DNA of 64,000 nt from Thalia democratica (lineage: Eukaryota). Positions 23,351 to 53,646 of the stretch are shown in pieces. The notes under the pieces were generated by a model. That model was not told the origin of the DNA and made no database searches. It saw only the letters and a list, made by a program, of their open reading frames with translations. The stretch lies in assembly GCA_965202585.1 (NCBI GenBank), contig OZ241826.1:31124001-31188000 (forward strand), read 5' to 3'. Position 1 is the first letter of the stretch. Every line of letters starts with the position of its first letter. A program made the position numbers and the translations under genes.

Positions 23351-23819
23351 GTTTGTAACAGTTTAAAAAGTATTATAGAGAAAATTAAGCTAAAACAAAA
23401 TGATGATAACTACTTATGTGCAATTTCATTAACTGAAGAATTAAAGAAAGAAGCAGCAAAAGAAAACAGATCACGAAGTGTATCGTTAAAATTTAAAGAC
23501 TCTTACTATTTTGATTGAAATTCTCTCTTGGGTATAATTTCACTCTTGTATCTCGAGTTCAATTAGTTGTCTGATATGGTCAGTTTTTGGTGAAATATCA
23601 AGTAAAATGTTAAACATTAAATGAGCATTTCTTGATAAAAAGATTGCAGATAACTTCTTTGATATAATAACAATTTCAAAATGTTTTACTATGGAGTTAG
23701 CTAAAATTTCATTGCACAATATTCTTAATTTTTCTATTCAATATTAAAAACAAGATGTTCAAGTTTGTATTTTATTAAAAGATAAATAAAAAAGTTCAAT
23801 TAATGTGTGTAATTTTTTT

Positions 23820-26400
23820 AGCTTAGTTCTGATGGGTACCATTGTTAACACAAGTATAATAACACGAGTCTACTTTTATTGTTGTAGTTATCCTAGAAGT
23901 GTGAAATTGAGTTTGCAAGTTGTTCTGCAACAAGCAAACTGTTCATTGGTGTTGTCTCGATAGCAATAGGTTGTTTGACTGTATCCAAAAAATAAAACTT
24001 AAGTTAGTTACAAATAAATTGTAAAAAGTTGCAGGTGCTAAGAGATTTTAATTAGGTACAGAGAACAAAAAAATATGTCGTCATACTAATTGTACTGGTA
24101 ATAAAAAAAAAAGAACTTTGTAGATGAAATACTATTAAGTTAGAATTTGTCCTAAATACACAAGTTTTACTACAATCAACAAAAAAATACCGACAAATAC
24201 GATACAACAATTAAAAATCTGCAAAACATGTGAGAAGGTTTTATCATAATTTTCACCGTAGCTTATCCTCTTTTTTTTTCTTTAAAGGTTTGAAAATAAA
24301 TACATGTTCATTTTATTAGCAAGATAAGCATGCAAAGAAGGAAGTCGAAAATAGAGTTAAAGGTTGTCAGAAATTACATTTCGAAGAAGAGTAGTTAGAT
24401 TTAAAAATATGTTTTTCTAGAGTTATCTAAAAGCATCAGATTTTGTGAGAACTACTTAATGTTATTATTCTCGTAAATTTTAACAAAACCAATAATAATG
24501 TTTATAATTTATTATTTAAGCAAGCTATACACAGTCCAATAAAACAAACATATAAATATGTTTAACGTGTTTTTATTGGGATCTTTTGGTACGATGGTTA
24601 AGGCTGTCTACCAACCAGAAATACGTCGTAAACCTTAAAACTGTCCAAAACCTCTAGTTGAAGATTCATATTTTTTTCCAACAAATTGTGTTTGCAAAGT
24701 TAAAATGCTTCTTTAAGGAATTTATTTTTAAAATATTGAAAAGAAGTACATGTTAACTTTTAAAATTTTTATTTTCTCTTATTAGCCAGATCTGCATGTG
24801 AAGAACGAGTCGAAAAGGTTCTGGAGAAAATAGAGTTGAATGTTGTCAAACACAGAAAGATTTCGAAATTTGATTTGGTGGAAGAGCTAAGAGAAGTTAG
24901 TTTTTGAAATAAATTTTCCAATAACTACAAAATCTAAAAGCACAAGATTTTGTGACTACTAAACTGTTTAATGTTTCCACTCTCGTAAAATTTAACAATG
25001 TCAGTAATAATGTTTATAAACTAAACACAGTCCTATATAGTTATACCAATAAAACCATCTTATGTTTCATATTAACGTGTTTTTATTGGGATCTTTTTGT
25101 ACGATGGTTAAGGCTGTCTACCACCCAGAAATACGTCGTAAACCTCTAAAATCTTCAGTTTGAAATTCATATTTTTTCAAACAAAATAAATAATGTAAAT
25201 TTGTGATTTGCAAAGTTAAAAGTGCTTCCTCTAAGGATTTACTTTTTAAATTGAAAAGAAATGCATGTTAATTTGTAACAATTTTATCTTATTAACAAGA
25301 TCAGCTTGGAAGAAGGCAGTCTTAAAGAAAATAAAGTTGAATGTTATCAAACACAAGAAAGATATTGAAGTTTGACTTGGTGGAAGAACTAAGAGAAGTT
25401 AGTTTTTAAAATAACGCTTTTCAATAACTACAAAATCTAAAAGCAGAAGATTGTGCGACAACTATACTATTTAATGTTTACATTCTCGTAAATTTTAACG
25501 AAACGAGTAATAGTGTTTATAAATTATTATCAAAGTAAGCTATTCACAGTCCGTTTTAGCTATACCAAAAAAATCATCTTATGTTTCATTTTATTTTTGT
25601 TGGGATATTTTGGTACAATGCTTAAGGCTGTCTACCAACCAGACGATAAGAAATACGTCGTAAACCTTAAAACTGTCCAAAATATTCAGTTTGAAATTCA
25701 TCTTTTTGTTCAAAAAAATAAAATTTATTTTCAAATAAAATTATTTTATCTTTTTAGCAAGATCTACGAATGAAGAAGGTAGTTGGAGAGGCTGAGAAAA
25801 AGATGGAAATGGCAGAAGTTAAGTACAGAAAGATTTTAAAGTTTAACTTTTTGGAAGGGATTAGATTTTTAAACAAAAATTTGTAATTGTTAAAAAAATC
25901 TAAAAGTGTTAAGAAATGAGATAATAAAACTGTTTTATATTTTGATAGTCGTACAGCTTTATTATAATAGTTTTAACTTTTTTGAACTGTTATAAACGTA
26001 AGCTATACACAGTCCTACAAATCTTACCAACAAGACATCTCATATTAAAAACAATTTAATTGCTAAATAACATACTTATTGTAGGGAGCTTTTGGTACGA
26101 TGGTTAAGGCTGTCTACCAGAAATACGTCGTAAACTTTAAAACTGTCCAAAATCTTCAGTTTAAAATTCATGTTTTTTTCCAAAAAATATATATATTGTG
26201 CTGCAAAGTTAAAAGTGCTTCTTTAAAGAATTTTCTTTTTAAATATCGAAAAGAAACACATATTAACTTTTAACAATTTTGTTTTCTCTTTTTTTTTTAT
26301 TAGCAAGATCTGCATGTGAAGAAGGCAGTCAAAAAACCGAGTTGAATGTTGTCAAACCCAAGAAGATTTTGAAATTAAACTTTTGCAGAAGACCTCAGTT
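23820..26400 (+). pseudogene. Receptor-kinase pseudogene with tandemly amplified exon3-exon4 unit
   Basis: TM-exon relic 23890-24000 (CEIEFASCSATSKLFIGVVSIAIGCLTV). Alternating E3 copies (about 24320, 24785, 25297, 25757, 26304) and E4 copies (about 24575, 25088, 25603, 26084), each with frameshifts, deletions or lost splice sites. Confidence 0.75.
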
Positions 26401-28121
26401 TTCTTAAAAAACGCTTAACAACTTGGTTTTATATAAAATTTAAATTGCTTTAAATCGAACTTTTGCTACATTGAATACATTAGTCTGCCAGCAAGATAGA
26501 CAAAAAAAGTTTTAGAAGTCAAAATTTCCTGCATATAAAAACTGTTGAAAGAAAATGTATTTTGTTTCAATATTATCCGATTAAATATCACCAAATACTT
26601 GAAATGAAGTTTCAAACTAAGAATTTTTAACAACTCAAGATGTTAAAGAAGTGTTCCTGATTTGTTCAAATAAAGTCAAACCATTAAGTTGGGACTCATT
26701 TGTATATGCTAAAAAGTAAAGTATAAAATAAAAGTGACTGCAATTAATATTTTTATAAACTGCAGATAACTGTTTATATTTAATCAAGCTGGAAATAATC
26801 TGTTTTTTCAACACCGTCAGGCAAGATGTTTGAATAGAAGCTGGAAAACTTGTCGAGTTTCACCACCAACACATCATTAAATACAATCATGTATTTTACG
26901 AAGAGTTTGAAAGTAAAATTTGTTAGTAATTCTATAAGTGCTAACAGGGATTTTTTAATTAAAATATACAAAGATTTTCTAATAAAAATGTTTTTCTTGA
27001 AAATTCAGTTAAAAATAGACTATTTTACTCATACTCTTTTATAGAAGTAGATTTTCAAGCTATATTGCCTTTAAAACTGAAGTTTGGATTACAACTGGCT
27101 GAATAAAACTTCAAAATATCAGAAAAATGCTGCTTGGTTGTCGGGGATTTAACGTAAACAAGATATTCGAAATTCAGCGATTGTGCAAAACGCAAAGTTA
27201 GTCTTGATTTTGACAAAACATAATTTGGTAGTGTTTTTGGCCATTATCAGTATTGCTGAAATTTAAATAAACATAATTGGTGTTGACAGTCGTGTTAAAT
27301 AATTGAGCTATATTTATTTGCATTTGTAGGTTGTTTAAGTGACCTTTAATGAAAAATTATTTCTATCAATTATGGATAAATCAAAAATGAATTTTTGTTA
27401 ATATGTAAAAATAACTTGTAGCTTAGAGAGATAAAAAAAAAAGAACAATAGCTCTAAAATAACAAGTTTTGGTCAGAAAAATTATTTATTTAAAGTTTTG
27501 TCAGAAGCATACCGTTTCAAAACACGAATGGTAGTTGGAAAGGAGAACCCAGCAAATACCTTTCTTATTACAAAAGAATTAGTTGAATATTTAAAACTAC
27601 TGTTAGTGCGATTAAAGACTTAAGAGAGCCAGCAGTTGTTGATTAACTTCCATGAAGGTTCGCTCTAAAGAATGACTTTAGAATTTTTAATTGAATTTAA
27701 TCTTTTAAATAAAAATTAGATTTTGAATTAAAAGGTTTGTGAAATATGTACTTAAGCTGTTATTTTCAAATTTAATTAAAAATAATAACTGAAAAGAATA
27801 AAAACTCTCCAAAAAAAGTAATAACACATATGTGCTCTGCTCAATAATGAAAATGACTAATAAACAAAAATTCTACCCCAACGAGCAGTAAGTAAAAAAA
27901 AAAAACAGTTTTGTGTTTGTCCAATGATAAATTGTACTTTATTGTAGAATTATTAAAATAATTGCCGATATAAGACAATCAGCTTTAAATTGCAAACTTT
28001 CGAAAACATGTAAGTTTAAATTCATATATCATTTATATGTTTCATAAATCTTTTTATAGTACTTAATCAGACTAGCTGTATTGTATTATTAACATATTGC
28101 TTTACTTAAAAACAAATTTAA

Positions 28122-29330
28122 GGTTTGAAAAAACAAACGCTGAGACTGAAGTGGCAGCCCTTTCTAAATTCTCCCACAAAAATATTGTCAAGTATTTGGA
28201 CGTGATGTGGGAGAATTTTGATGAAAAAATGAAGTTAGTTATAGTTCTCTAATGCAATGTATGTAATTTGAATATAACTGTTTTCTAGACTAGATATTGT
28301 TTCTTTTCAAAGGTTTTTGTTGCAAAAACACAGATTAAAAGTGACAGGTGCGTAGTGAAACGGTTAACTTTACATCACATGTCGATTTTGTGTACTTAAG
28401 TTTTTAACAAGCAAAAATGTTAATATTTTGATTTTTTGCAATTAAACAGATAGTACACTTTACTTTTTAGATAAATCAGCCACCAAGAAAAGCATGTCAA
28501 TTGTTTTAAGTAACTATTTTTTTTATAAAGAAATCTCCTTTCAACGGTTTTGGAAGAGGAAGCCATAGTGGACATTGAAAGGAAATGCCAACAAACCTGT
28601 TAGATTTGTATATATATTTTTGTTTAAATTATGAAGTTATTTCTTAAAAATCGTAAAACGACTCTTAAAATGTTTCTAACACATATTGTTTAAAACTAAG
28701 TTTTACATTTTACTTAACTTAAATTTAATCACCCATACTCAAGTTAAATAACACTTTAAAGTAGGGGTTAGCAAACTGAAACAAAAAGTTCTGGAATGCA
28801 CAGTAATTTTAACTAAAAAAAATTACTTTGGTACTATGATGAGGGCTATTTACAAGGAGGACGGGCGGCATTATGTCTTGAAAATGCAAACGGTCCAAAA
28901 CCTGAAAGTATAAGATTTCTGCACAACTTTTAGAAGTGCTTTTTCTAGTCATTCTATTTGACTGTTACAAAAGATTAGTACATAAAAATAGTTGTTAGTT
29001 TTGATGATAAGCACAATTATAAATTCTTTAATTATAATATTTACTTCCAAAGGGAGTTTTATAATTCGAACTTTTATAAAGTGTTTTTGTTTGTTCGTAC
29101 TTTTTGTACAAACAAACTGTACTACATTTGTTAATTTAAGAGCAGACTGCTTTACAGTGAATATTTTGGTCATGGTTTTTTTAGTAATATGTTACTAACT
29201 GTAATAAAAAAAATTAGGTTTGAAAAAACAAGCGCTGACACTGAAGTGGCAGCCCTTTCTAAATTCTTCCACAAAAATATTGTCAAGTATTTGGACGTGA
29301 TGTGGGAGAATTTCGATGAAAAAATAAAGT
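28122..29330 (+). pseudogene. Scrambled kinase N-lobe exon relics (E5 28122-28233, E6 about 28530-28600, E4 about 28825-28905, E5 29215-29330)
   Basis: FEKTNAETEVAALSKFSHKNIVKYLDVMWENFDEK twice; YFGTMMRAIYKEDGRHYVLKMQTVQNL; NLLSTVLEEEAIVDIERKCQQT. Confidence 0.75.
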
Positions 29331-31709
29331 TTTCTACGTTTGTGTACAAAATTTCAAAACTGTTTGAAAGTTGAAACAGACAAATGCTGGGTCTTTATCC
29401 TTTAAGTTAGAAAAAATAGAAGACTACCGAAAGAGGCTTGTAAAATTAATATTCTTGTAGTTATTTAAAAAACTTATTTTGGATATAAAATGCAAAGGTG
29501 CTTCAAAATAGCCATTAGAAAAAACATTCTCTAAACAAACCTTAATCCAAACATGTTTATATTATGAAAACGATTATTACAAAACTATAACTCTAACAGT
29601 AGAGAATTAAAAGAGTTTACGGTTCCGTGTTCGCCATGATGATAAACTGTACGACATTGGAAAATATATTTCAGCAACTTTGCTAAAGTGTATGAAAAGT
29701 TAACAACTTGTCACTCAATAAGTTTTTGACTGCTAGCTATGTTAATTATAGTCAAACTTTTTATCTCCAAATTATTTAAAAACCGAAATAAATTAAAGCT
29801 TGGTTTTCATTTTGCCAGTTTATAGAGATGTGAATAATGCAAGGACAAGTATAGTTTTTAAAAATGATATAAAAAATTTAACAGCTCGAGATGCTGAAGA
29901 AAAAGTATTCAAATAAGGTCAAATTAAAGTTGGGACTTCATTGTAAAGACCAAAAGATCAGATAAAAAAAGATTATGACTTCAATTTGATATTAACTGTT
30001 TTTATTATATATTTAATTAAACTGCAAATAAAATGTTTTAAATAAGAAAATTTTGTAAAATACAAGCGTTTAATTCAGTAATGGGGCAATATTTACATGA
30101 AAAAAGCAAAGATAGAACTTCGTCAAACAGTTTTATTGTATACTTTATTTTTAAGAAAAATATTTTTTCATCCTCAGGCAAGACGTTAGGAAAGAAACTG
30201 GCTGAGTTTCAAAATCAACACATTATCAAATACAATGATGTGTTCTACGAAGAATTTGACAGTGAAGTTAATACTTCTAAAAGCTGTTTTGTGACATGTA
30301 TGGATATATAAATTTTATAATCTGTAAAAAATTATTGTACTTAAGACAGAAGATAAAAAAAAGATTAGCTCTAAGACAAAAAAATGTGGTTGGAATAAAA
30401 TATTTATTTCAAAATTTTTCATAAGAATACCTTTCCATTATCAAGATGGCAATATACTAAATAAACTTGGATAAATTTTCAACGAAAAAAAACAAAAGAG
30501 TTGCTGAAGTCACACAAAATCTTGAAATTGTCAAAGAAGAGTCACGGAATTATTTACGTGTTTAAATCATCAAGTTGGAACTCTTTTGTATAGGATTATA
30601 ATCAAGTTTAACTGAAAATTAATATAAACTGCGTAAACATTTTGACTTCTTCAACTGGAAATCACAAGCTCTTTATCAACAACACTTTGTGGAATAAAAG
30701 TATATAGCAGAGTAATGGGAACAAACTACAGAATAATGTTGCTACAATACAATGGGCTTGATGCAACAAAATTTTTTGATTTACATTGAATGTGTCAAAC
30801 ACAACATTTTAATCAAACTACAAAATACTGGAGTGTTTTTTGCCATCACGAGCAATGCTGAGATGTAGAAAACGAAATTGTTCTAAATAAGTAAGCTGTA
30901 TTTCGGTGGATTTTTAATTTATGGCTCCTAAAAGTAATTTTTTATAAAATACAAAGTATTGAATTACATGGGTACATCAAAAATTAATTTTGTTTAGCTG
31001 TAAAAACTTGTTGTAGTTGAGAGTGACAAAAAAAATAAAGTTAATTTTCAAACCGTAGTAAAATTGTCACAAAAATTTCAAAATCATACCTTTCAATATT
31101 TCAAATTGAGGTGGGAAAGGAGAACCTGGCAAATTTCTTGGCTCTAAAATTCAGAAGAGGATCTGCTGGGTTATTGCAAAATCTACAAACTGTTTACCAA
31201 GTAGGTGTAAAGCAAACATAACTGTAAAGTTTTCATACAATGAAAACATAATTTTAATTACAATGTAGAAAGATTACATTGTTTTATTTTACAAAAAGTT
31301 AAATATATCAGAACAGACGGAAATAAAAAACAGAGATATTCTTCCAATATGTCTGGATGAAGAAATCGTCTTTGGCATTGAAAGAAAATTGGGTTTATAA
31401 GCTTTAAAATGTTAAAGAGCAAAAGTTGCTTTTACAATAGCAAGGAAGGTATGCAAATGAAGTTAAATAAAAGATTAAAATGGCTGAACTTACCCACCGA
31501 ATTATTTTAGTTTTGGAGGTACTCGAAAATGTGATTTTGGAAATCAAAACTTTTTAAAAACAACCAAAGCTAATTGATAAAAAGAGTTACTTGAAAATTT
31601 TAAACTTTATTTTTTGTTGTAGGTTTAGAATATATACATATAAAACTGCATATCATGCAAAAAAGAGGTTTATAAAAACAATAATAATGTTTACTTTAAA
31701 CATTTATAG

Positions 31710-31795
31710 GGATCTTTTGCCAAAACTTATCTTAGAGCACTTTATGAGCGTGACAGTCAGGGATACTTTCTAAAGTTTCACTTAGTGCAAAATGT
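31710..31795 (+). pseudogene. Isolated intact-looking kinase subdomain I-II exon paralog (GSFAKTYLRALYERDSQGYFLKFHLVQN)
   Basis: AG and GTGAGT splice sites, open frame, same phases (0 in, 2 out) as 48727-48809; no downstream partner exons recognised. Confidence 0.6.
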
Positions 31796-32197
31796 GTGAG
31801 TTAAAATATTAATCTGATTGTATGTATGACAAGCATTTATGTATATCAAAATTTTGAGTATCAAAAAAGTTGTGAATTGCTTGTAAAAATTACTATAAAT
31901 GCAAACAGGTTTCTATTTTAATCACGTTAGAATAAGTAAACTTTTGTAGCTGCAGGCCAGTTGCATCTAAAAAAACTAATAGAGGGGTATGGATTTAAAT
32001 AAATTATCCAATGCCTTAAACTAAATGGCAATGTGTCTGAAAATGCTGCTTTACTAAGATTTATTGAAACAGAAATACATAAGTTTCACAGCTACAGGCC
32101 AATAAAACAAAAAATTATGTAGACAAAACATATAAGTTTAAAAACCCACTCTTTATGGAAAAACTTAAAAGAAGTACAAGTTTACAATACCTCATTA

Positions 32198-33830
32198 GCA
32201 AGATCTGCATATTAAGGAGGCAGTCGAAAAGAGTGTTGAAGGTTGTCAAACACAGGAAAGTTTTAAAATTTGACTTTGTGGACATTTAAGCTAATAACAA
32301 TTTCAACACTGTCAGGCAAGACGTTAGAAAGGAAGCTGGAAAACTTGCCGAGCTTGTTTCCGGCAGTAGAGTTCGAGAGTATATAAAGAACTTGAATGAG
32401 ATTAAGGCAACCAAGTACTACCGCCTTCCAACCGTCATAGCAGCTTTTCTACTTGTCCTTAAGTAAGAAACAAAAGATGTTAACAGCTTTAGGCTGATGA
32501 CGATGTGAAAAAAAGAACTTGAGCAAGCAACACTGAAGTTGATGCAACTGGTGGTCGCCCTTATTGTTTGGATTTAATCATTTTCAGACACAGAAAATCT
32601 GGTGGAAGTAGCACCCGTAAGGAGAGCAGAAGGTTGTCAGGGGAATGGATTGAGGAACATGGATAGTAAAAGAGTGAGGGAGTACCTCGAGGGTTTGGAT
32701 GGTAGCAAGGAGGTCAAGAACCACAAATACTACCTCCTTTCAACCGCAGCTGTATTTCTTTTTTCCTTGAGCCAGGCACGGAAGAAGTCAGCAGCTGTAG
32801 GCCCATGACGTTGCCGTACAGTGTTTTGTGCGAAGAGGTAGCAGTTTATCCAGCAGACAGTAGTGGAGCTGAAGAAAAGAACAAGCATAATTGGATTGCA
32901 ATCATTGCTGGTTGTATTGCGGTCGTTGTTATGGTGGCTTGTTGGCTGTACTTCAAGAAGAAAAATAAAGCTCAAATTGGTAAAGATAATATTTAAACAT
33001 TATTTATTACTTTTCTAAGTAATAAAATGTATGTCAGGAGACAGAGTTTGACATGTACTATGGCATTGTTAAAGAAAAAGCTGCCAGTGTTGGCTGTGCA
33101 GAATTTTTACTAAATTCTGGGTTAAAAAAGGTCAGTAGCTGCAGGTCAATGCTAAAAACTTATAGAATCGTTTGTGAAAAGGATCCAAACGTTTCACCAA
33201 GCAGCAATTGGGCTGAATAAGAGAAGAACCACCATTGGAATGCAATAGTTGTGGTCCTTATAGCAGGTGGTTGTCCTGATAGTAGTCTTGTTGGATGCAT
33301 TATAAGAGGAAAAATTATGTTCAAGTAAGTAACACTTTAAAACATTTTGTACAATTTTGGTAAATCTTATAGAATGTAATTATTCAAATCTTACAAATTG
33401 CTTTGGGCTGTTAAACAAATAAATCAAACAGTGTTTAAATATAGCTACATATTATTCTGAACATTTTGTAAAGGCAGTTCCTTATGTACAATTTTACTTT
33501 TTCATTATATTTGTACACCATAATTTTCAAAACTTGTTGTTTGATTTTAATAATTTTCAGGCGCAGAAAATCTTACATAAGTAGAGGTGGCACCCGCAAG
33601 GAGAGCAGAAGGTACGTGTCAGGGGTTTGAGGGACGTAGAAGGTAAAAATGTGAGGGAGTATGTTAAAACTTGATTGAAAAGAGGTCAAGTACCACAAGT
33701 ACTTCAACAGCAGGCAGCGGGTACATTTATTTTCTTCTCATTCAAATGTCAGCAAAAGAAAAGGTAAGTAGTTGTAGGTTCATGACATTGCTGTATAGTG
33801 TTGTCTTCGAAAAGAAGATAAACTTTGTTG
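32198..33830 (+). pseudogene. Cluster of ectodomain/TM exon paralogs (32308-32465, 32588-32979, about 33060-33325, about 33561-33830) plus an E3 relic at 32198
   Basis: 32588-32979 has splice sites and encodes ..EGCQG..(frameshift)..SCISFFLEPGTEEVSSCRPMTLPYSVLCEE..TM..KKKNK, homologous to 46084-46523 (GC..SCRPM..SVVCE..TM); the other copies are more decayed. Confidence 0.7.
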
Positions 33831-36800
33831 CAGTAACTACATTAAACATGCTTTAAAATTGTGATAGAAACAACCAACTGTTCAGTTTTAATTCATATTT
33901 TGGGAACAGTAATAAACGAATACTAATTTAAAAACTAATTTATTTACAATTTTTTTTCTCTCTGACAACAAAGCATTGAAAAGACCTTTAGCAAGCATCT
34001 TTAAGGATATTTTGACTCAATCTAAAAGATGTTTGTTTAAAATAAGCTAAAAATGACTGCAGCCATTAGAGTAACTTTACACAGAAATAACTTTTCATTG
34101 TTATTCAGGCAAAGAAAGTTGTTGTACAGAGAGCAGAACTAAACAAAAATGTTTATTCACATATAACAAGCTTACTAATAAAACAATGAAAAAATTCTAT
34201 AGCTAAGGTTTAAAAAGCTAACTTGTTATTTTACTAAAATGTTCTCTGCTAAATGACTCTTGTGAAAAAACAACATATATTCTTAATCTAGACACAGTTT
34301 GTTTAGAAGACTATATAAGTCTACAAGATTAAGTTGTTGATATATTCTTCAATGAAACTGCAAGCAAACTTTAATAATATTAAAGCTACTATTACATAAG
34401 CTGACAAGCTCTGTATTTCTGTGGAAAGAAAATCTTTAACTTAATTTAGTTTAAATCTAAGGAGTAAAAAATCAATTAATAAAAGAAAATTAAAACTTTA
34501 AATTTGAAAATATCTAAATAACAAGAAGCATGCATAGTCCTAAGAAATAAATTCAAAATGAATTGTAAAGAGAATTTTTATTAAAAAAAAGTAATTTGTT
34601 TGATTATTACGTCACTATGCTCTGAGAGCTTTTTAATACTCTTCTGGTTTTATAGCGTTCTAGAATATACTTAAGTTTAAACCTTGTTTTAGCTAAATAT
34701 CACATATTCTTTCTCTACTTATATTCTAAGATCATGAACTAACACCATTTCTGTTAACTAAAATAAAAAATCTTATGATGACAAGAACTAATAACACGTT
34801 TTGAATTTTGAGAACCATTTAAAGAGTTTAAGTTCTTAAGCTTAAAGAAATATTGATTAAGTGTATATGCTACATATTTATGTATAACTTTTAATATTGC
34901 AAATTTGTTGACTATTATAATAAATACTTCGTGTTAAGTTTATCTGAGATAACATAAACTACATAGTATAAAAAATCATTTTATTTGATTAATAAATGTA
35001 TACTTTTTCCAACACAAGATTTGTTCTAACCTACAACAGCAACTTTTAATCTCAAACAAAAAAGTACCATACATCAAAAATAAACAAGAATAATTCTCAA
35101 AGTTTTATTTCTTTGATGTTTCCAAGACTTTTTAAAAAAAAATTTTGTACACTTATTCAAGTAGCTTTATAATAAAGTTCGGTCAATAAAAAAAAGAACC
35201 ATGTGGTAATTTCAAAATGAATCTAAACTACGTTTAAGTGAAAAGGGAATTAAATATTTTATAAAATCCATATTTTTAGGTCTAACCAAGGATCAAACTT
35301 TAGTAAAGTTTAAGAATATATGCAATAAAACCAAATAAAATAGTTCCAGTAATAACCAAATTTATCAGACTTTATGTAGTAACTCTTGATGTATTGATCG
35401 TTTTCTATTAGAAAAAGGTGTTTTTTCAAATAAAAGTTAATCAAGTTAAGCTTTGTTTTATTGTAACAAGTTATAGATGTCTAGTAAATTGTAATATATT
35501 TGTAAAAGTTAAATAAAAGGTAAGTAGACCTTCACATCAGCTAAAACAGTTTAGGAAAAATAATAAGTCTTTATGAATCTTATAAGGATTAAATTATAAG
35601 TCTTATAAGGACTATTTTCTTTTATATTTTTACAATATACTAAACATATAATATACATAATAAGATAATTATTTAGAAACATACATATGTGTGGTCCTAG
35701 TTAAGAGTTTTCATAATCTTCAAAGGTTCACTAGGTTAAGAACATTTTTCAAAAGTGAATGTAACAGGTAAAAGAAGGTTCGTAAATAACAGTACCAATT
35801 TATTAGTAAAATTATACATAATATAGTGTAAAAAGGTTAGGTTTTGGTCGAAAAAATTGTATAAATAGTTTTTGAATTAATTAAAATGCAATAAGTAAAT
35901 TTCTAATAAAAAGTTATAGTTGTTACTTTACAATAGAAGGTGATGTTCGTAAAACTTACAAAACTTTTAATACTTAAGTGTTTTTGTTTCAATCTACGAA
36001 TATCTGAAGGTTTTGAATAATGTTTTGTTTATATTGTTTTCCCCACTAAAAATTAAATATGTTATATATTCTCTATCATTAGTAATATTAGTTATATACA
36101 GTTTAAACGACTAATACAGTCAGCGTTGAAATTTAAAAGTACAAACAGTTTTTATTTTAAGACGGTTTAGCTGTTTATTTTGATATTAAATTTGCTCAAC
36201 TAGTAAAATTAAAAGTTAAGAATTTTAAAAGGAATATCACTTTTTAACTAACCGAATATAACTTTATCCGAACCTTGAGTATAGTATTGTGATACTAGTT
36301 TTACATAAACAAGCATTACATTCAATATATACTAACAATAAAGAAAACAAAGTTTCATATCTTAAAAGTAGTGTTTGTGTATTTGTATAATAATTTTAAA
36401 CTCAACTGGTTCAATAAACTTTTTTTAAAGCATGAAATATTGAAAATAGTTAAAATTTTCTTAATATTTTGAAATTTCTTTTTAATGTTTAGTTTTAATC
36501 ATAGATCTGAAAAATGTGGCTTTCAAAGCAAACTTTTCTGGCATGTGATAAGTGTTTTGTTTATCCATTTAGAACTTCAACACTAATGCTTTAGGAAGTT
36601 AACTAGTACCTAAGTTTTGAGTAAAGCTAAAAAAGTTTCTTAATTATTACAAATGTTAAAAATAAAACAGTTTAACCATTCCAAAAATTTACAACAAAAG
36701 TTCTACCAAAATGTTTATAACAAAATTTAAATACTTTTGCATTTACTTTTCTGAGTTGTAAGTTATTTTAAAAAGCCAAGTTACTGTATTTGTAATTTTT

Positions 36801-41161: not shown

Positions 41162-41400
41162 GTGCAAAAATGTTTTTTGTCTTGTTCACATTCAGTAAAT
41201 ACAAAGATTGGTACTTTCACTGCTTATACTGAACTATTTACTAAATGTGATGCTGAAAAAAGGTGCAAGGAAAAATGTGAAATATTAGCACCTATTACGA
41301 ATAAAAGGGATGCTCATAAAATTTTGAAGCTTTTTGAGAAAAACACTTTTGAAACAATATTAGTTTTCATGATCGTTCTAGATTATATTAGGTTTTAAAG
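41162..41400 (+). pseudogene. Inverted, internally deleted copy of the C-type lectin gene
   Basis: SHSVNTKIGTFTAYT..ILAPITNKRDAHKILKLF is joined directly to ILVFMIVLDYIRF (TM end), versus 42588-43307. Confidence 0.85.
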
Positions 41401-42587: not shown

Positions 42588-43577
42588 CTAATTTTTTTGA
42601 AGCTTATATTTTCCTTCATCTTTGAATGCAGTTCTTTTCAACATACCGATCTCTTCCCTCAATTCACCGATCTCCGTTTTCATTCTCCTAACTGATTGCC
42701 AACGAATGTAAGCCAAAATAACAAAAACCAGAATCAAAAGCAGGCCAATATCTGACGATACAAAAACACCATTAACACCAATTTCATTATCATCAAGTTC
42801 ACCATCTTGACTAATAGGTTCCGCTAAAGCCTTTTCAGCCGGCTTCAGGCACAGGTACTTGTGCTTCTTTTCGAAGAGGCACTTCCTATCCTGGCTCTTA
42901 ATTATGTAAGGCTTGCCTTCATGCGTGTGGGGCGCAAAAAGGGCTTCAGCGCAGTTGGTGGGCGACTTGAGAAAGTTGTAATATATCTTGCTGTGTTTCC
43001 TCTCATGCCACTTTACTCCATTAGAAAACAATTTCTTGTCCTCATCTTTCGTGTAAGTCACGTCCAAACCAACCCAATAGTCAGAAACAACATCAGTGCT
43101 GACGTCACACGTTGCGTTTTGTGAGTTTGATTTAAAAAGCTTCAGAATTTTATGAGCGTCCCTCTTGTTCGTAATAGGTGCTAATATTTCACCTCTTTCG
43201 TTGCACCTTCTTTCTGCCTCACATCTAGTAACATAATCAGTATAAGCAGTGAAAGTGCCCGTCTTTGTACTAACGGAATGTGAACAATGAGACATATTGT
43301 ATTGTATCTAAAAAAATTGTAGATAAAATTACATTTTCTACCACTAAATCTTAAAAAACTGTAACTAAATGTTTAAAAATATAAAATAATAGCTTTAAAT
43401 TACTTCCATTGTAAATAAAAACTAAATTATTTCATTTATTAGCAACACAATTAACTTCATTTTAGTTAAACTAACACGAGAAAACAGTTTCAAAAGTGTA
43501 CAATAAGCAAACAAAGTTTAAACAATTATATATACCAACAAAGCAAAGTAACCAGCTATGTAAACGATACGTTGCAT
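42588..43577 (-). CDS. Type-I transmembrane C-type lectin domain protein, 259 aa; exons 43577-43536, 43421-43404, 43307-42588
   Basis: Spliced N-terminus MQRIVYIAGYFALL-FLFTME-IQYNMSHC forms a signal peptide (all junctions phase 0, GT-AG). CTLD with C..C, YWVGL, terminal YLC; TM IGLLLILVFVILAYI; short heptad-like tail. Confidence 0.85.
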
Positions 43578-44581: not shown

Positions 44582-47500
44582 ATGTATATCTTCATTTTTG
44601 ATATCGGTCTTAGTAGGACTACAGGTATGTTTGGTTGCAATTTAAATAAAGTATTTTTTTAACTTTTTTTACTTTGTTTTAAATGTACTAAATAATTAAA
44701 TTAAACTCCTTAATTTATAAGTTTTAAACTCGAATAAAAAAGATGCATACTACTGTTTTTAAGTTTGATGTACACTTTATTGAGATTGTTTTTCTTCTAA
44801 TAAACTGTTTTTGTACTCATCCCGGTTATTTTTAAAAATCTTCTGTTGTATAGTGACCTACATACTTTATAGGAAATATTTACTAAAGTTTGCTTATATT
44901 GAAATGAACACTTATTCAAATAACTTTAAGCTTGAAAAAATGTGGTTCTTTTACTATCAAAAGTTTTAGTTTAGTTTGATCTTTAAAACTTAAAAATAAA
45001 TTATTTCAATTATTTCTTATTTTAACGATTTGAATTTCAAATGTAGTATATAAACTAAGATAAATCAAATTAGTAACTTCTCTCTTAGTGGCTATTAGTA
45101 CTATTTTTCTTACTCTACTTTAAAACTTATTTTTAACTTTGTGGCATACAAAATGTAAAAATAAGTAACTATTTCTATCGTATAAACCTTATAGTAATGC
45201 TTAATTTAACTTTAAATTTATTTTTTATTGTTGATATAGATTTCCATTGTATAAGTTTTAACTTTTGCAGTTATATAATTTAAGGGTTGGAAGTGGTATT
45301 AGTAAGTAATGTTAGTTTTAAAGTAATGGGAATCTTTTAAATTTTATAGTTTAAACAGTTCATTTTTTTTTTCAAAGTTGAGCAATTATTAAGAATAACA
45401 AAATTAATTTTAGTTTTACTTTTTTATATATGCAGTTTTATACAGTCATTTGTCTTAACTAAAAAAGTACTGCTCAATATACCATAAAATAAAGAGCTTA
45501 TTTTGATATAATAAAAAACGTGCAAATCAAATTATTTTCATTACCCGTTTTCAGTGGCAAAAGTTCCGATTTTGTCAAATAAACAAACTATTATAAACTG
45601 TTAATTGTAAATACAATTTAATATTTTGCTTACTTAAAAAGTCGAAGTCTTTCCCACTGAAACCGGGTAATGAATAAAACAATCAATTTGCACATTTATT
45701 AATATATTTGTACTCATTTTTAATGCGTTTCACCGTAGTTAAGAAATACAAATATGTACTTTTTAGTATAATATATATACAACAATATATTTGTTCCTAA
45801 AACCGTTTTAATATGCAAATATATTTTCTTAGTAATTTTTATCTTGTATTTCACATCTGTAAGAAAACAAATATCTAAAAATAAAAAATTATTGGCTTAT
45901 ATATTGTCTGTAAATACTTCCGATGATATTGCTCCCAGACAGACAAGATGCTTATTTTCAAAGCTTCTCTCTTGATCTATTTTTACACAAAAAGGAAATG
46001 TTTATGTTTACTGCACTTATTGATTTTTTTCATGTTATGTTTAATAACACTTTAATAAACTAATAATAAAAATAAAGGTGCAGGAAAGTTTAGTTTGGTT
46101 GAAGTTGGAGCGGGGGAGGTGGGCGAAGGCGCGTGCGAGGGAACGAAGAAGGAGGCAGACTTCAGGGGAGCGAAACCGGAGGAAATCAGGAGGACGTTGG
46201 TGGGAAGCGGGGCGCTGGAGGAGCACTTTGATGGTTACTTGCGGTTGAGGAGCGAACTTGCGGGGTGCGCGGAGTATTTGAGGATCGTGGAGGGGGAGGC
46301 GCACGGGTTTCGGAGCTGCAGGCCGATGTCGGAAGGTTTCAGCGTCGTTTGCGAAAGGAGCGTGGCAACGAGCTCTCCGGCGAGCGGCGCCGAAGACGGA
46401 AGGGAGAGTGAAGGTGAAGGAACTTTGAAACTTGTTCTCATCATTGTCGTGGCAGTTGTCGCTGCTTCGTTGGTGGTTGTCGTGTTGGGCTGCTGGCACT
46501 GTAAAAAACAGCAAAAAGTAAAAGTTAGTGATGTTTTTTGGTACTTTAAACAATTTTTTAACCGAAAGGTCCTAACAAAATATTTATGTTTGTATTTTGT
46601 TTAAATCATTGCTTTGTTTTGTCTTCTTTTTTTCATAGTATATTTTCTATTTATGTGATTTTGTAGTGTTTTCATGACATTTTCAGATATAAGTACAAAA
46701 AAAAAAGATTGTAATATTGCAAAATATATTATGTTTTTAGGTTTTTTTTTAACCAACGTATTGCTTTGTTTCTAAATCAAGCTTTAAACAAAAGATAATA
46801 AAAGCGTAAAGTTAAAAACAAAGTTTTTTTTTTAATTTTTGAATTCTTAACACTTAAAGGAGTTAAATCTTTTTAGAGTAGATTCAAAAATTGTTTTAAT
46901 TTTTCTTTAAGCTAATCAGAATAAAGTTGCTTTTATCTTTTCAAACTAACAAATTTTTGCTTCTGTTTTGATATTCAATTGATATAAATACAACAACTAA
47001 GATAACCTATACTTCAAATAATAACTAATATAATAAATGTACAGTTTGAGCTGAAATGTTATGAGCAATGATTTGTATATAAAATGATATTAACGTGTCA
47101 AAGAATGTTATAAAGACTTGTTAAAACAATTTATTTATGTTAAAAATGTGGTAAATGACATTTTTCTGGTAACATACTGTTATTTAATTTTAAAAACTTT
47201 TCTTTTAATTTTGTTTAACTAAGTTTGCATTAAGTTAAGTTTACTTTTGTTTGTTGATTGAACAATTTTAGTTATATTAAATAGTATGTATGAAAGGCAT
47301 AGCGTGTTTTATTTTGTCTTTAAGTATATAGATATTTTTTATTGAATTTATAGAGCTTAAAGTTTTGTTTAACAGTTAATTTATAATAGATAGAAAATAA
47401 GTTGATAGTATTTGGTTGTTTACTTGTTCTTTAAAAATTTAAAAGTATAAATTAAAATATAAAGTCTACAGTAATTTTTTGAAGCAATTTGTTTAATAGA

Positions 47501-50500
47501 ATAACTGATAAGCATTACAAAGTAGTTAGTAGTTTTATGTTTAGCTATACATTCATTTTAATTTATAGACCAGAATTATTTTTAGCAAAAGTTAAAAAGC
47601 CTGTATTTGTATTAATTTTTGAACTAGTTTTTAGTCTTTATTAATATTATGTCTATAGACTTTGTTTGTTATAAATTAAAAAACTGTAAATTACATGTTT
47701 ACTATATTTAAGCAAAGTCAGTTATATTAAATAAATCTGCTTAACTTTCGTATTTGAACTTTTTTTGTCACATATAAAAAAGTTGGTTATAATTAAGTTG
47801 CTTTAAGGTGTTTTTATCTTTGTTATGACTAAAAATATATTTTTTTGTTAGTTTTAATACTAAAACTACCAACTTTACAATTTTTTGTCATCACTTTACT
47901 AAAGGGGCTTTTTAAAGAATGTTTTATTAAGTTTTAAATTTCTGCTGTTACCAAATATTGTCTTCTACTTTCATAAAGGCTTATAAAAGGGTCGTTTAAA
48001 CGTTTTTTAGTGCTTATTTCAATTAAAAGACTAATATTTGGAAAACTAACAATTTGGTTTTTGGTAAGTTATTTTTTATTTATATGATTTTGTAGGGTTT
48101 TGTAGGATTTTGTATTTTGGTTTTGTATTTAATGTACAGTTTTACAAATAAAAAGATTCTGTTAATGTAATGTTGCAAAATATATTATGTTTTAGGTTTT
48201 TTTACCAAAATACTGCTTTGATTCTACACCATGCTTTAAACAAAAGATAATGAAAGCTTAAAGTTAATATTAAAGTTTAACTTTTTAGTTTTTAACACTT
48301 ATAGAAGTTAAACTTTTTTTAATAACTTTTTAATGAAAAGGAAACAAATGCATGTTAAATTTTAATAAGTTGTTTTATATTTTTAGCAAGATCTGCGAAT
48401 GAAGAAGGTAGTTGGGAAAAAGATGGAGATGCTAGAAGGTAATTACAGAAAGATTTTGAAGTTTAACTTTTTGGAAGGGATTAGAGAGGTTAGGTTTTCA
48501 AACAAAAATTTGCAATGCTTTACAAAATCTAAAAGTGTATAGAAATGGGATAATAAAACTGTTTTATATTTCGATAGTCGTACAACTTTATCAAAATAGT
48601 TTTAACTTTTTTGAACTGTTAAAAACGTAAGCTATACAAATTCCTATGAAATTTTACTAATATAATATCTCATGATTAAAATAAACTAACTGCTAAATAA
48701 GATACTAATGTTTTATTTATTTGTAGGGAGCTTTTGGTACGATGATTAAGGCTGCCTACCAGCCTGACGACCAAAAATACCTCGTGAACCTCAAAACTGT
48801 CCAAAGCCTGTAAGTTAAAAATTCATATTTATTTCACCAAAAATGTTGTATTTGTCATTTGTGAAGTTAAAAGTGCTTCTTCTAAGAATCTACTGCTTGA
48901 CTGTTATAAAAATTAAGTAGTATAAAAACTTTTGTCAGTGTTTAATATTAAACAAAAGTTTTAAATTCTATAACTATGTAGAATAAATTTTAAAACTCAA
49001 TGTTTTAAAAACAATTTTAAGCTTATTTATATTACTTAAGCAGATAAGTTGTATCTAATATATTTACAAATGCTTATTTTACATATTTTGTTTTGAAATA
49101 TTAATAGCAACATACAAGTTATAGCATTGCTTAGAATAAAATAATTTCAAGCTACGACAAGATGACCGCTGAAAAGGAGGTTTCTCATTCCTCGAAGTTC
49201 TCCCACAAAAACGTGTTGAAATACGTGGACGTTATGTGGGAGAACTTTGATGACAAACTTAGGTTAGTTGAAGTTCTTAACAAGTTTTGAACAAAAAAAT
49301 TAATTAAATCTTACACTTTTGTTTTCATTACATGGCAAGTTAATATAAAAGCTAGTATTTGTAGTACCCAGTGTTAAATTTGATGATTCAAATTGAAAAA
49401 TGAAAGGTTTAATAGTTGCTTCTTAACAAGAAAGTTAAAAAACTTGGTCAATTTGTTACATAAGACAAACACAAAAAAACGTCTCAAGTTGTTCTAGTTA
49501 TTTTTTTTCAACTTCAACTTTATTTTTGTACAGTGATCTCCTTTCAACCATTTTGGACGAGGAAGTTGTTCTGGATTTGCAGAGGAAGTGCCAACAAATA
49601 CGTTAGATATTAACTTTTACTTAATTTTATTTTCCAAATTTTATTTGATTTTTTGTATCAAAAAATACATATAATATATTACAAAATTTACAGTTTCTTA
49701 GTTTCACCGCAAAACGGATTTTCAAACTGTGATTTTCCAACAAAAAAATCTATTAAGCTGACAAACTGCAAAATTTGATAAAAGTGTAGCGAAATTTTTA
49801 GAAAAAAACATGCTTTATGATTGCTTTGTGATTTTTTTAATGCAAAACCACAACTTAGAAATCCGTTTTGCAGTGAAACTAAGTAACTGTAAGTTTTTTA
49901 GTAAGTTATCTTTTTAAATATATGAACATTCAGTTTGTTTTGAATTGATTCCTGTGTTAAGTCTGTATAAACCAATTATTGAAAAAAACTATACAAAAAT
50001 ATTTAATTTTCGAAAAAATATCTAAGTACATATTATTTAAACCAAACTTTATTTTTTTCTTAACTTAATTTTAGTTACTAACATTTAAATTATATAACAC
50101 TCTAAATTATGAATGGTTCACTTTTGCACGAGCGTCACTTTAGCAAGAGTATCGTTGTGCAACAATGCTGCCGTAAAAAAAGACGCCGTGCAAAAATGAC
50201 CCTGCGTGCAAAAGCGTCTCCTCCGGCAAAAGTCCGAAAATGACCCTGCGTGCAAAATTGACCCTCCGTGCAAAAGTGTCCTCTCGTGCTAAAGTGACGC
50301 TCGTGCAAAAGAGTCGCCGTGTAAAAGTGTCCCACGTGCTAAATTGACCCTTCGTGCAAAAGTGACGCTCGTGCAAAAGTGTCCTCTAGTGCTAAAGTGA
50401 CACCCACCTTTCTAAAGTAGGGGTCGACAAACTGAGACAAAAATTTCTGGCCTGCGAAATTTACAATTATATTTATTTATATGCTTGAGAGTTAAATTAT

Positions 50501-53500
50501 GATTAATTGTAAACATGTCATTACACAGATGCGCTTATATTTATGTTTTTATTTGAAGTAAAATGAATATTAAGACGCTGTAGCCCGCAAAGCACTTTTT
50601 TCTTTTAGTCTTGCGAGGAACTTTTTTCTGGTAACTCTGACTTCTTTCTCTTTAAAAGGTCCAACTCCTGCTCTAAAGCTATTTGTTGACATACAACTAG
50701 TTTACATTAAATATTTCGTTTCAGTATTATTTTTTTTTTCAAGCTTGTAGACAGAAAATTTATCAACACTATTTGATTTAGTATTCTAACTTAGTATTAG
50801 TTTACAAGTACCAAACTTAAAAACACAGCTTTGCATTTAGTGTAAAACCAACAGCATTATAGTTTATTGAACAACAAAAAAATGCGCTCCAAATATTTGG
50901 TCCTAGGTTTTGGTGCACAAAGAACCTTTCGGTTATCGAGTCGCATACCACGGATACCTTTTAACGACTTGTCCAGGACAATATAAAAATGTCTTGTTCG
51001 AACTTCAACGTATATAATTAATCCTCGTACAGTAAAGATCAATTAATTAAGAGTATATTTTTTTAAAATTAACTTCATAAGAATTTCAAGTTCAAAATTA
51101 ATAGTTTTTTATACTAACACTAAATAATAATCTTTTTTAATGTTTTTTTAAAACTACTGTTTCTATATAACAAAAGGTATCCTGAAGTGTGAAATGTTAA
51201 AGAAGTTTTTTGAATTTTTGTAAAATGTTTCTGTTAATGAAGAAAAAAAAATACTACTAACAAAGTTATTCTTTTAGCTTTACTTTTAAATTATTTTCAT
51301 GACTAAGATTAGCTACCTGTATTAAAAAAATAATCATTGAACTTTAAGTTATATTTTAGTATTTCATACTAAATATATTATTTTATAATATGTTTTAAAA
51401 ATTATTTCACACTTTTTAGAATATAGGTGTTTATAAAACGATTTGTTTTGTATCATTTGAATATGTAAGTTTTTTTAGTACCAATTTAGCCTTAAATCAA
51501 ACAAGAGTACATTCATAGAAAGTTTGGTATTTGTATTAATCAAACAGTACATTATAGTTTACAACACAAAAGCATGTTTATAATAATATTTAAATCAAAC
51601 GTAACATGAACAAGTATTAATTCGGTAGAGTAAAGATTATTCCATAAAAACATAGTTATTAACTTTTTTCGTTACTAGTCAACAAACAAATACTTATAAA
51701 ATAATTTTACTTCAGCCCCGCAGATATGTATTGTCCAGTTTCAAAGCGCAAACAAAACAATTTTAAAAGAACTACAGGACACAGTAGGGCGGAGATTGTG
51801 TCCTAACGAAAGTTTTCGTGTTGTTGACGAGGTATGTAAAATAAGATACGTATAAAATGTTCTTAAGTGTAAAAATAAAACCTATAAACTTATAGCTAAA
51901 TTACTAAGTTTCGTTCTGATTATAATTAAAATCAGCTGCTAGATAAATATGATAATCTTCGTTTTGATAATATGACATAAGTAAACTTTTTTTTTACAAT
52001 AATTTTGTATATTTTAATAAACTTTTGTTTTTAGGTTTTGTTGTGGTTTTTAAATCTACATTATATCTAGACTGTGAAAAGTACATGACTGTTTTACTAA
52101 AGTATTCAGCTATTTAGTTATAAACACACGTATAAATAAACACATAACATTAGGTAGTTAAGTTTACAATATTTTATGAAAAAAAGAATAGTTTTTTGTT
52201 CATTCAGTAAAAACTTCAAACTTTTAATTACCAGATCCTCGATGCGCTGCAGTACCTGCATGAGGAACACCTGATGGTCCACTGCAACGTGAATCCGGAA
52301 ACCATCTTTCTGGATGAGCGCCATCAGGTGAAGCTTTCAGGTTTCGGAGAGTCTCAGAGTTCCAGTGAGTTTATTTATGAGCACTCGGTCTTAGTTATTT
52401 ACACGTTTTAAACAAATATTCAACAAAAAAATAGTCGAAACGTGGTATTCAAGTTCAGTACAATCTTCAATAAAAACGTAGTTTTGATTAAGCAAATAAA
52501 TATGGATATAATTTATAAACTGTTGCTCAATACTTACAGTGCCGACCACTGACAATTTGCCGACCGGTCTGGTCTTTGTTGACCCGAAGATGTTTGTCGG
52601 CACAGAACTCTACTCGCCCCTTGATCAGGTAATTATGAGTTGTTGCACTATTTAATTCTCAGTTTTAAATTATTAAATTAAAAAATATGGTTGAGATTCG
52701 AATATTCTTGCATAAAAGTTTTTCTTAATGCACAGACAATTCAATTTATATATTTTTTTCTTTGGATTAGCAACCATTAAAATATATATTTAACTAGAAA
52801 TAAAACTTAAATTTTTTGGTTTATACACTAATGTTTTGTATGAAAGTTTGTATTGAAATAATGTCAATTTATTGTTCCAAACAGCACACAAGCCCATTCA
52901 CCTCAACCGTAGACTTGTATTCTACTACCCTTGTGGCCGTGTTGCTCTTCTCTCGCCCCAGGGACATCAGGGACACAGTTGAGGAGGCCAAGATGTTGAC
53001 GTTGCCACGCGAAATAAACGCGGATCTGGTTTGTTTTGCTTGTTTTTCATGATTCTAAACTAATTGCTAATTATTAATCATTGATTTTGTTTTTCATGAT
53101 CCTTTGATAATTATTAACTGATAATCTCTTAATGTTATCATTAGAGATTACAATTATTAATGTTATCCTTAAAAAAATTCATAAAAAATTTTAGGCTGAA
53201 CTTTTGAAGAAGGTTCTGTTCAAGACTGGAACGCTTCGACTCTTGGCAGGAACGTTCAGGGAGGAGCTAGCAAAAATCAAGGGGGAAATGGTAAGTTTTG
53301 TTTTGACTTAATAATCAGTTTTCTAAACGTTTACTAGTTTTTATCTAGTTTGCACTTATTTGTTTAAATCCATGGTTCTTACTTATTTCACAATTTTATC
53401 AGTATTCATAAGTCATAAAAGGTTGTGATTATTTATTTTTCAAACGCTTAAACAAATCTCAACTTCAAAACTCTTGTTAAGAAAAGTAATTGAGCTGAAA

Positions 53501-53646
53501 TGCAAATTAATGACGTTTAAAAATATAAGCTATATATAATTTACACATTTTGTTAGTAATGTCGTTTAATTGCTTATAATTTATGTTTCAATGTAGTTAA
53601 TTACTCAACTTAGACAATTTTACATTAACAGGTGGCTGTAATTTAG
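44582..53646 (+). CDS. Single-pass receptor pseudokinase (CTLD-like ectodomain, TM, eIF2-alpha-kinase/PKR-like dead kinase), about 478 aa
   Basis: Phase-consistent exons 44582-44624, 46084-46523, 48387-48488, 48727-48809, 49152-49262, 49534-49601, 51716-51831, 52235-52364, 52540-52628, 52885-53028, 53195-53290, 53632-53646 sum to 1437 nt with no internal stop. Motifs GAFGTMIKA, YLVN, AEKEV..SHKNVLKY, YLHEEHLMVHCNVNPETIFL, VKLSGFG, TVDLYS. First exon and start codon uncertain. Confidence 0.8.
45520..45693. mobile_element. Short MITE with about 45-bp imperfect TIRs
   Basis: GTGCAAATCAAATTATTTTCATTACCCGTTTTCAGTGG versus CCACTGAAACCGGGTAATGAATAAAACAATCAATTTGCAC. Confidence 0.7.
46660..48320. repeat. 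Direct duplication inside intron 2 (about 46700-46870 vs about 48165-48320)
   Basis: Shared TTGCAAAATATATTATGTTTT..GCTTTAAACAAAAGATAAT..AAAGTTAA. Confidence 0.6.
49685..49895. mobile_element. MITE with about 35-bp TIRs
   Basis: TTACAGTTTCTTAGTTTCACCGCAAAACGGATTT / AAATCCGTTTTGCAGTGAAACTAAGTAACTGTAA. Confidence 0.7.
50113..50407. mobile_element. Short foldback element made of the CGTGCAAAAGTGAC repeat family
   Basis: Inverted head (GTCACTTTTGCACG x2) followed by about 10 direct units; same family as 37321-38711. Confidence 0.7.

Follow-up and report, generated by a model that had tools for sequence, protein, structure and literature searches.

A stretch of 64,000 nucleotides of the Thalia democratica genome (GCA_965202585.1, contig OZ241826.1, positions 31,124,001 to 31,188,000 of the forward strand), here called the window and numbered from its first letter, carries on its plus strand at 46,084-53,646 a gene of eleven exons that very probably encodes a membrane protein with an inactive protein kinase domain. 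The reading that we favour, with a probability of roughly 0.6, is that of a maintained gene for a single-pass, receptor-like pseudokinase whose outer part resembles a C-type lectin-like domain (CTLD). The protein would have about 465-480 residues and its N-terminus outside the cell, and would consist, in this order, of a four-cysteine domain, probably a CTLD lacking the sugar- and calcium-binding loop, an acidic stalk, a single membrane helix, a very short juxtamembrane segment, and, in the cytoplasm, a kinase-fold region of 317 residues. The predicted architecture is unusual. We assembled the eleven exons, designated A to K, by reading the region between 46 and 53.7 kb in three frames, and list them below together with a first coding exon that a preliminary description of the same DNA had proposed.

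44582-44624, plus strand: proposed first coding exon (MYIFIFDIGLSRTT), 14 codons with an ATG, a hydrophobic start, and a phase-1 donor (CAG/GTATGT); uncertain
46084-46523, plus strand: exon A, with the ectodomain (46086-46358), an acidic Ser/Gly-rich stalk, a helix (46425-46496), and the stop-transfer sequence CKKQQKVK
48387-48488, plus strand: exon B, covering the juxtamembrane segment and the first part of the N-lobe (..YRKILKFNFLEGIRE); both junctions in phase 0
48727-48809, plus strand: exon C, glycine loop REGAFG (across the B/C junction) and beta3 with YLVN (48778-48789)
49152-49262, plus strand: exon D, helix C Glu (AEKEV), SHKNVLKY, and beta4 (MWENF)
49534-49601, plus strand: exon E, most of the insert of about 25 residues between beta4 and beta5
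51716-51831, plus strand: exon F, beta5 (ICIVQFQ), hinge, and helix D
52235-52364, plus strand: exon G, helix E, the dead catalytic loop HCNVNPET (52280-52303), and GFG (52340-52348)
52540-52628, plus strand: exon H, activation segment and P+1 loop (VDPKMFVGTELYSPLDQ)
52885-53028, plus strand: exon I, helix F (VDLYS, 52909-52923) and the F-G region (FSRPRDIRDTVEEAKMLTLP); the best-conserved stretch
53195-53290, plus strand: exon J, helices H-I with the Arg of subdomain XI (TLRLL); both junctions in phase 0, donor GTAAGT
53632-53646, plus strand: exon K, the last four codons (VAVI) and the stop; phase-compatible, acceptor aacag; uncertain

The joined frame of exons A-K comprises 463 codons and a single, terminal stop. 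AG and GT are found at all exon borders, the unusual donor form gttag is common to four donors, and the phases along the chain are consistent (0, 0, 2, 2, 1, 0, 1, 0, 0, 0). In a window that is very AT-rich as a whole (GC about 0.26), the exons stand out as GC islands, with a GC content of 0.36-0.57 compared with 0.20-0.28 in the introns. Exon E is the only reading that restores the phase between exon D, which ends in phase 2, and exon F, which needs phase 1. The start of exon G is fixed at 52235 by an in-frame TAA at 52208, and the acceptor of this exon is also present in a relative, L001, which comes, like all relatives that we found, from the Tara Oceans plankton metagenomes. Comparative support for exon K is absent among the relatives examined. 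The preliminary description had counted twelve phase-consistent exons; eleven of these are read directly, whereas the first, at 44582-44624, is phase-compatible only. Its donor fits the phase required by exon A, it displays neither conservation nor a clear signal peptide, and the interval from 43.7 to 46.0 kb offers several other ATG..GT candidates for a first exon. The long intron contains two more GC islands, at 50100-50470 and 50870-50990, which we considered as exons and rejected as very-high-copy repeats; their summed contig word depth is about 5e5 to 7e5, and related copies occur at 37.3-38.7 kb.

The kinase fold is recognized in exon G by itself, which matches the Pfam family Pkinase (PF00069) with an E value of 4e-8 and 33.4 bits against a cut-off of 31.7, and which scores better with Pkinase than with PK_Tyr_Ser-Thr (33 vs 23 bits). 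In the alignment, the subdomains follow each other in the canonical order: glycine loop, beta3, helix C Glu, catalytic loop, DFG position, P+1 loop, helix F Asp, and subdomain XI Arg. Alignment with other kinases, among them named GCN2 sequences, puts the Asn of YLVN in the column of the VAIK Lys; the Glu of helix C is kept. HRD is replaced by HCN (52280-52288), exchanging the Asp for Asn, and the entire catalytic loop reads HCNVNPET where other kinases have HRDLKPxN, with Asn in place of the loop Lys and Thr in place of the loop Asn. DFG has become GFG (52340-52348), and APE has become SPL, with Leu for Glu. The loss of three catalytic motifs (YLVN, HCN, and GFG), reported in the preliminary description, was thus seen at the very positions given there, and further residues of the catalytic loop and of APE are lost as well. 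Three older copies of exon C upstream in the window retain the beta3 Lys (YVLK at 21686 and 28815, YFLK at 31710), showing that the Asn is a derived loss within the local family. On its sequence the domain is a pseudokinase, predicted to be catalytically dead and unable to transfer phosphate. One could imagine an atypical active kinase with relocated residues, such as the Lys two positions past the Asn (YLVNLK), as in WNK kinases, and the Lys at +2, the preserved G-x-x-G of the glycine loop, and the Glu of helix C would all fit such a kinase. We consider it very improbable, as the catalytic Asp, the loop Lys and Asn, the Asp of DFG, and the Glu of APE are all replaced together, and we know of no active kinase that lacks all of them.

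This dead domain has been retained by selection. Searching 1.8 billion representative proteins with exon G, we found one close relative, P0005, an open reading frame (ORF) of 84 residues. It lies on the 1.8-kb Tara scaffold L001, which carries exons F, G, H, and I with the positions of acceptors and donors unchanged. A search with P0005 as the query returned only P0005 itself, and scans of the JGI metagenomes with patterns of exon A and exon I gave no match. The protein identity to L001 is 39% for exon F, where there is one in-frame 3-nt indel, 75-77% for exon G, 82% for the 3' part of exon H, and 77-81% for exon I; the introns are barely alignable, and the acceptor region of exon J can be aligned at the end of L001. 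For exon G, the 3' part of exon H, and exon I, the ratio of nonsynonymous to synonymous substitution rates (dN/dS) is 0.09-0.11, with silent sites near or past saturation (dS above 1). HCNVNPE is identical in L001, so that the catalytic loss must be old and the dead domain kept since. Exon A has a relative of its own, P0134 on the Tara contig L002, with 66% identity, in which the four Cys, the helix, and the stop-transfer sequence are invariant; the two differ by two indels, both of 3 nt and in frame, with a dN/dS of 0.29 and a dS of 0.61. Because the exons for the outer and membrane parts and those for the kinase are both conserved, with dN/dS of 0.29 and about 0.1, respectively, the gene is under selection, a constrained pseudokinase rather than debris. 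The receptor-like membrane pseudokinase of the preliminary description was in this respect strengthened, with HCN kept in a relative at a dS above 1 and a dN/dS of about 0.1.

Upstream of the gene, tblastn and blastn searches of the window with the gene revealed an array of partial copies:

21686-33853, plus strand: partial, mostly decayed copies of exons A-E

The same searches found no copies of exons F-K in this array. A unit of exon B, intron, and exon C is repeated in tandem 4-5 times at 24542-26384, with a DNA identity of 65-79%. One copy of exon B, at 25758-25865, is 83% identical, a match that extends to the acceptor and to the four codons preceding the Met, and the copies of exon D at 28124 and 29219 are 58-64% identical. 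Copies resembling exons D and E keep their splice sites; the exon E copy at 28.5 kb retains the AG, the length, and a gttaga donor. Each of the four A-like copies at 32290-33853 is damaged, having acquired a frameshift or an in-frame stop or lost a Cys. Such a series of decayed 5'-half copies offers a rare view of receptor-gene turnover. The array also raises the question of whether the gene itself might be a decaying or non-functional member of a lineage-specific receptor-kinase family, under relaxed selection and intact only because its decay is recent. The loss of at least five catalytic residues, the many dead partial copies flanking the locus, the frameshift in the L001 relative, and a branch of about 3 changes per site in the kinase tree would all be expected from such a history, yet all 11 exons are open with canonical splice sites, comparison with relatives near or beyond saturation at silent sites gives a dN/dS of 0.1-0.29, and the dead loop HCNVNPE is conserved across a dS above 1. 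We therefore regard decay as improbable.

The outer part of the protein is encoded by exon A, in which four Cys at 46134, 46266, 46317, and 46350 (Cys 17, 61, 78, and 89) lie in a domain of about 90 residues, followed by a stalk rich in Ser, Gly, and Glu, a hydrophobic helix of 24 residues, and a basic stop-transfer sequence. The membrane helix and its flank KKQQKVK..RMKKVVGKK are clear and conserved in the relative, and about 40 residues separate the helix from the glycine loop of the kinase. The four-Cys ectodomain and the membrane helix of the preliminary description were located where it had put them. The N-terminal part would be outside the cell because of the positive-inside charge pattern. 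Exon A has tandem acceptors (46078/46084) and tandem donors (46517/46523), each pair 6 nt apart and all in frame; both acceptors are kept in L002, and length variants of two codons are possible at either end.

Several lines of evidence point to a CTLD-like fold of this domain. AlphaFold, run with an alignment of two sequences, gave one usable model of the ectodomain, with a predicted local distance difference test score (pLDDT) of 72 and a predicted template-modelling score (pTM) of 0.52. This best model has strands at residues 2-6, 50-56, 62-68, 71-77, and 86-90 and a helix at 31-41, and its first and last strands pair. The VIA structure search with residues 1-96 returned almost exclusively CTLDs, with 80-90 residues aligned and Z-scores of 4.5-6.1, including CD72, mannose receptor CRD4, DEC205, tetranectin, dectin-2, CD93, and the tunicate lectin TC14; according to the tool, such Z-scores are by themselves no proof, and the argument lies in the uniformity of the matches. 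The named matches in the feature search of the ESM Atlas were all clusters of the CTLD clan (Lectin_C, UL45, and Xlink), with scores of 0.73-0.79 that we take as a lead only, while the Atlas search by shape with the ectodomain gave nothing significant. The four Cys occupy the C1-C4 and C2-C3 positions of CTLD cysteines: in the model, Cys 17 precedes helix 1, Cys 61 opens beta3, Cys 78 follows beta4, and Cys 89 lies in beta5. The span from C1 to C4 is 72 residues, with roughly 20-25 residues too few between C1 and C2. Inspecting the sequence of exon A, we found no WIGL (the best candidate being GYLRL), no EPN or QPD, and no WND. If the domain is a CTLD, the short C1-C4 span and the absence of WIGL and of the sugar and calcium motifs would make it compact and non-sugar-binding. 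We consider it fairly probable that the ectodomain is a compact CTLD-like domain without classical sugar binding.

The ectodomain exon also appears to vary. Two runs from one sample yield contigs with six differences within 43 bp at 46171-46213, three of which change an amino acid (A to E, K to E, and A to V). A third run, from another organism, covers the flanks of 46200-46399 but has no contig within 10% identity for that interval itself. The outer domain may be evolving fast or diversifying.

The joining of exon A to the kinase exons is the weakest point of the proposed receptor, and the arguments for it are indirect. The end of exon A and the start of exon B are both in phase 0. The GC content at third codon positions (GC3) is 0.66 in exon A and 0.67-0.69 in exons D, G, H, and I, compared with 0.42 in a neighbouring lectin gene. 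The similarity of the protein to L002 stops at the donor of exon A, and the acceptors and the donor are conserved. The decayed copies provide a further hint. Older B-like copies have His-Val in place of Arg-Met and thus no Met, while their acceptor and first codons are kept, and they would start in phase 1 because they are 8 nt longer. An older A-like copy has a single donor after the stop-transfer sequence, ATTG/GTAAAG, also in phase 1. Since the older A-like donor and the B-like starts are both in phase 1, the borders of A and B might have shifted phase together; with one observation on each side, this covariation lends modest support. We consider splicing of exon A to exon B quite probable.

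The alternative would be two genes, one for a kinase-less CTLD-membrane receptor made of exon A, with a stop 26 codons past 46523, and another for a soluble pseudokinase starting at the Met of exon B at 48399. A gene of exactly this one-exon design, with a CTLD, a membrane helix, and a tail, is found next to the pseudokinase gene:

42591-43307, minus strand: single-exon gene whose product combines a CTLD and a membrane helix with a short basic tail; ORF of 239 codons, head to head with the pseudokinase gene

In addition, the frame stays open for 26 codons beyond the donor of exon A, with a similar read-through of 23 codons in the relative, exon B contains ATG codons, and no RNA joins A to B, the public runs being genomic. 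However, exon A provides no ATG and depends on an exon upstream of it. Its donor is conserved, whereas the tails beyond it diverge and stop at different positions. The four codons before the Met of exon B are kept in the copies together with the acceptor, this Met is in a poor context (C at -3), and the older copies of exon B have Val in its place and a covarying phase. The GC3 of exon A equals that of the kinase exons. Two separate genes hence seem unlikely to us.

The neighbouring gene deserves a comparison of its own. Nine Tara homologues with 35-73% identity all start at a conserved Met (MSCS..), and the profile of the family matches the CTLD of CD93 in the PDB with an E value of 2.8e-4. 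It shares with exon A the locus, a Cys-stabilized lectin-like domain, an acidic stalk, a membrane helix, and a basic flank, and a profile alignment puts the last three Cys of both in register. Unlike exon A, it has its own Met, WVGLD, a long-loop region, a GC3 of 0.42, and no kinase. A partial copy of this gene is present at 41162-41347 on the plus strand. The family has no signal peptide, yet the charge pattern places its lectin domain outside the cell.

A number of observations weigh against the receptor pseudokinase that we propose. At the 5' end, we found no convincing signal-peptide exon upstream of exon A, and the 5' exon is a guess. The transcript is another weak point: the four public runs that contain the locus are genomic, with contigs that cross the exon borders and carry no splice joints, and the spliced protein was not found in the protein collections, in which there are only exon-sized ORFs from Tara. 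The lectin-like nature of the ectodomain, claimed in the preliminary description, fits the VIA and Atlas matches and the positions of the Cys, but a Pfam scan of the N-terminal part gave no family match, with neither Lectin_C nor any other CTLD family at E values up to 1, and Foldseek searches of the PDB and of AlphaFold/Swiss-Prot with the ectodomain model gave nothing significant. The CTLD reading comes from one of five AlphaFold models, the remaining four scoring 49-59, and re-prediction of the ectodomain trimmed of its helix reached a pLDDT of 44, which is too poor for use. Nor is there significant similarity between exon A and the neighbouring lectin gene (BLAST E value of 23; hhalign probability of 1%). 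On the side of the kinase, L001 retains an intact DFG and could therefore represent a paralogue or an orthologue at a greater distance. Exon H of L001 (1202-1288) has 87 nt compared with 89 nt here, and a 2-nt deletion between LPAGLT and VDPKMF breaks the frame; the codons flanking this deletion are under strong purifying selection, and it could be an assembly error, a real lesion in a recent pseudogene, or the mark of a paralogue. Finally, the gene itself may be on its way out because it adjoins decayed copies of its own 5' half.

We revisited the possible ancestry of the kinase domain, for which the preliminary description had proposed descent from the eIF2-alpha kinases. The alignment confirms about 25 extra residues between beta4 and beta5, encoded mostly by exon E. 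This insert had been taken as a hallmark of the eIF2-alpha kinases; it is present at the expected place, but two unrelated metagenomic kinases, P0063 and P0065, also have inserts there. In sequence searches of the PDB, exon G matched MKK7 first and GCN2 second, and exon D gave five weak matches with PKR among them. The less degenerate, older exon D copy at 29219-29326 retrieved GCN2 first (E 0.07) and PKR next (E 0.27-0.38), and its HMMER alignment with PKR runs through EV.AL.K..H.NIV.Y..W..FD; the E values of the matches of exon D and its copy are 0.07-1, and no match outside exon G is significant. Searches of the PDB with exons C, F, and I and with the Lys-type copy of exon C found no kinase and thus cannot classify the domain. 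Over the whole domain, the identity to GCN2 is 18-21%, compared with 18-23% to other, unrelated kinases, and profile searches with the N-lobe, the C-terminal tail, and exon D gave the three named GCN2 sequences no better rank than the others. In a maximum-likelihood tree of 61 domains, a set that excludes the full sequences of PKR, PERK, and HRI, the domain could not be placed: its branch, 3.1 changes per site long, arises at a deep node that has no support. The top matches of the representative-protein search, namely multi-kinase bacterial proteins and convergent pseudokinases combining HxN with SGFG, were rejected as relatives. We found in the protein none of the sensor modules of the eIF2-alpha kinases (dsRNA-binding motifs, IRE1-like luminal domain, haem-binding region, and HisRS-like domain), and its C-terminus ends just past the kinase domain.

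The proposed descent thus stays unproven: GCN2 and PKR are among the PDB matches and the position of the insert fits, but the E values are weak, the identity to GCN2 is not higher than to other kinases, and the tree does not place the domain. An origin from an eIF2-alpha kinase is possible, and we would put its chance somewhat short of even. In the GCN2 pseudokinase domain of Bulinus (P0070), residues 178-216 read HRN...NIFID...KISGYG, close to HCN...TIFLD...KLSGFG here; this likeness may be convergence or a hint as to which domain of an eIF2 kinase should be compared. If an origin from the eIF2-alpha kinases were true, it would imply that a stress-kinase domain can be redeployed at the cell surface. 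A bolder scenario is a lectin-type receptor family of salps built on a PERK- or PKR-like catalytic domain and linking extracellular recognition to translation shut-off, in which this gene would be a conserved dead decoy or regulator and the upstream copies of exons A-E the wreckage of an immune-type turnover of the recognition half. We mention this scenario as a speculation that is unlikely in its entirety.

How might a receptor with a dead kinase function? A non-catalytic receptor or co-receptor is the likely mode. The ectodomain would bind a ligand or the ectodomain of a partner, and the dead kinase would then offer a docking site to an active kinase or to its substrate, or influence them allosterically. 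The most conserved part of the protein is the surface of the C-lobe from the activation segment to the F-G region. Such a scaffold function is suggested by analogy with ErbB3/HER3, RYK, ROR, PTK7, EphB6, and the kinase-homology domain of the receptor guanylyl cyclases, in which an ectodomain and one helix are combined with a dead kinase serving as scaffold or as allosteric partner. These animal receptor pseudokinases have the same layout and are the source of our working model. They belong to the tyrosine-kinase group or are linked to cyclases, and have large ectodomains, whereas the domain described here is of the Pkinase type and its ectodomain has about 90 residues.

The eIF2-alpha kinases (PKR, PERK, GCN2, and HRI) share with the domain a kinase fold of the Ser/Thr type, an insert separating beta4 from beta5, and the motif EV..(L/S)K..H.N(I/V)..Y...W..FD in helix C and beta4, and GCN2 shares in addition the stretch ..IFLD..H.VK..FG from the catalytic loop to DFG. 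PERK is itself a single-pass membrane protein. Unlike these kinases, the protein described here has no sensor domain of that family and has lost all its catalytic residues. To our knowledge, the TGF-beta receptors are the exception in animals, which are otherwise not known for receptor Ser/Thr kinases. In the OLD-1/FLOR-1 module of C. elegans, a membrane-associated pseudokinase is reported to act with an active kinase in pathogen recognition (bioRxiv 10.64898/2026.07.31.741986). Its kinase family and ectodomain differ from ours, and the likeness is one of description that does not imply homology.

We know of no described protein that joins a lectin-like ectodomain to a Pkinase-type kinase or pseudokinase, and our literature search retrieved none. 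The plant lectin receptor-like kinases, including the C-type LecRK, combine a lectin, a membrane helix, and a Ser/Thr kinase, have expanded by tandem duplication, and have known pseudokinase co-receptors. Their kinases are of the RLK/Pelle lineage and from another kingdom, so that the likeness to the salp gene would be convergent. If its transcript is confirmed, the gene would represent a new receptor design in a chordate relative, parallel to the plant lectin receptor kinases and their pseudokinase co-receptors.

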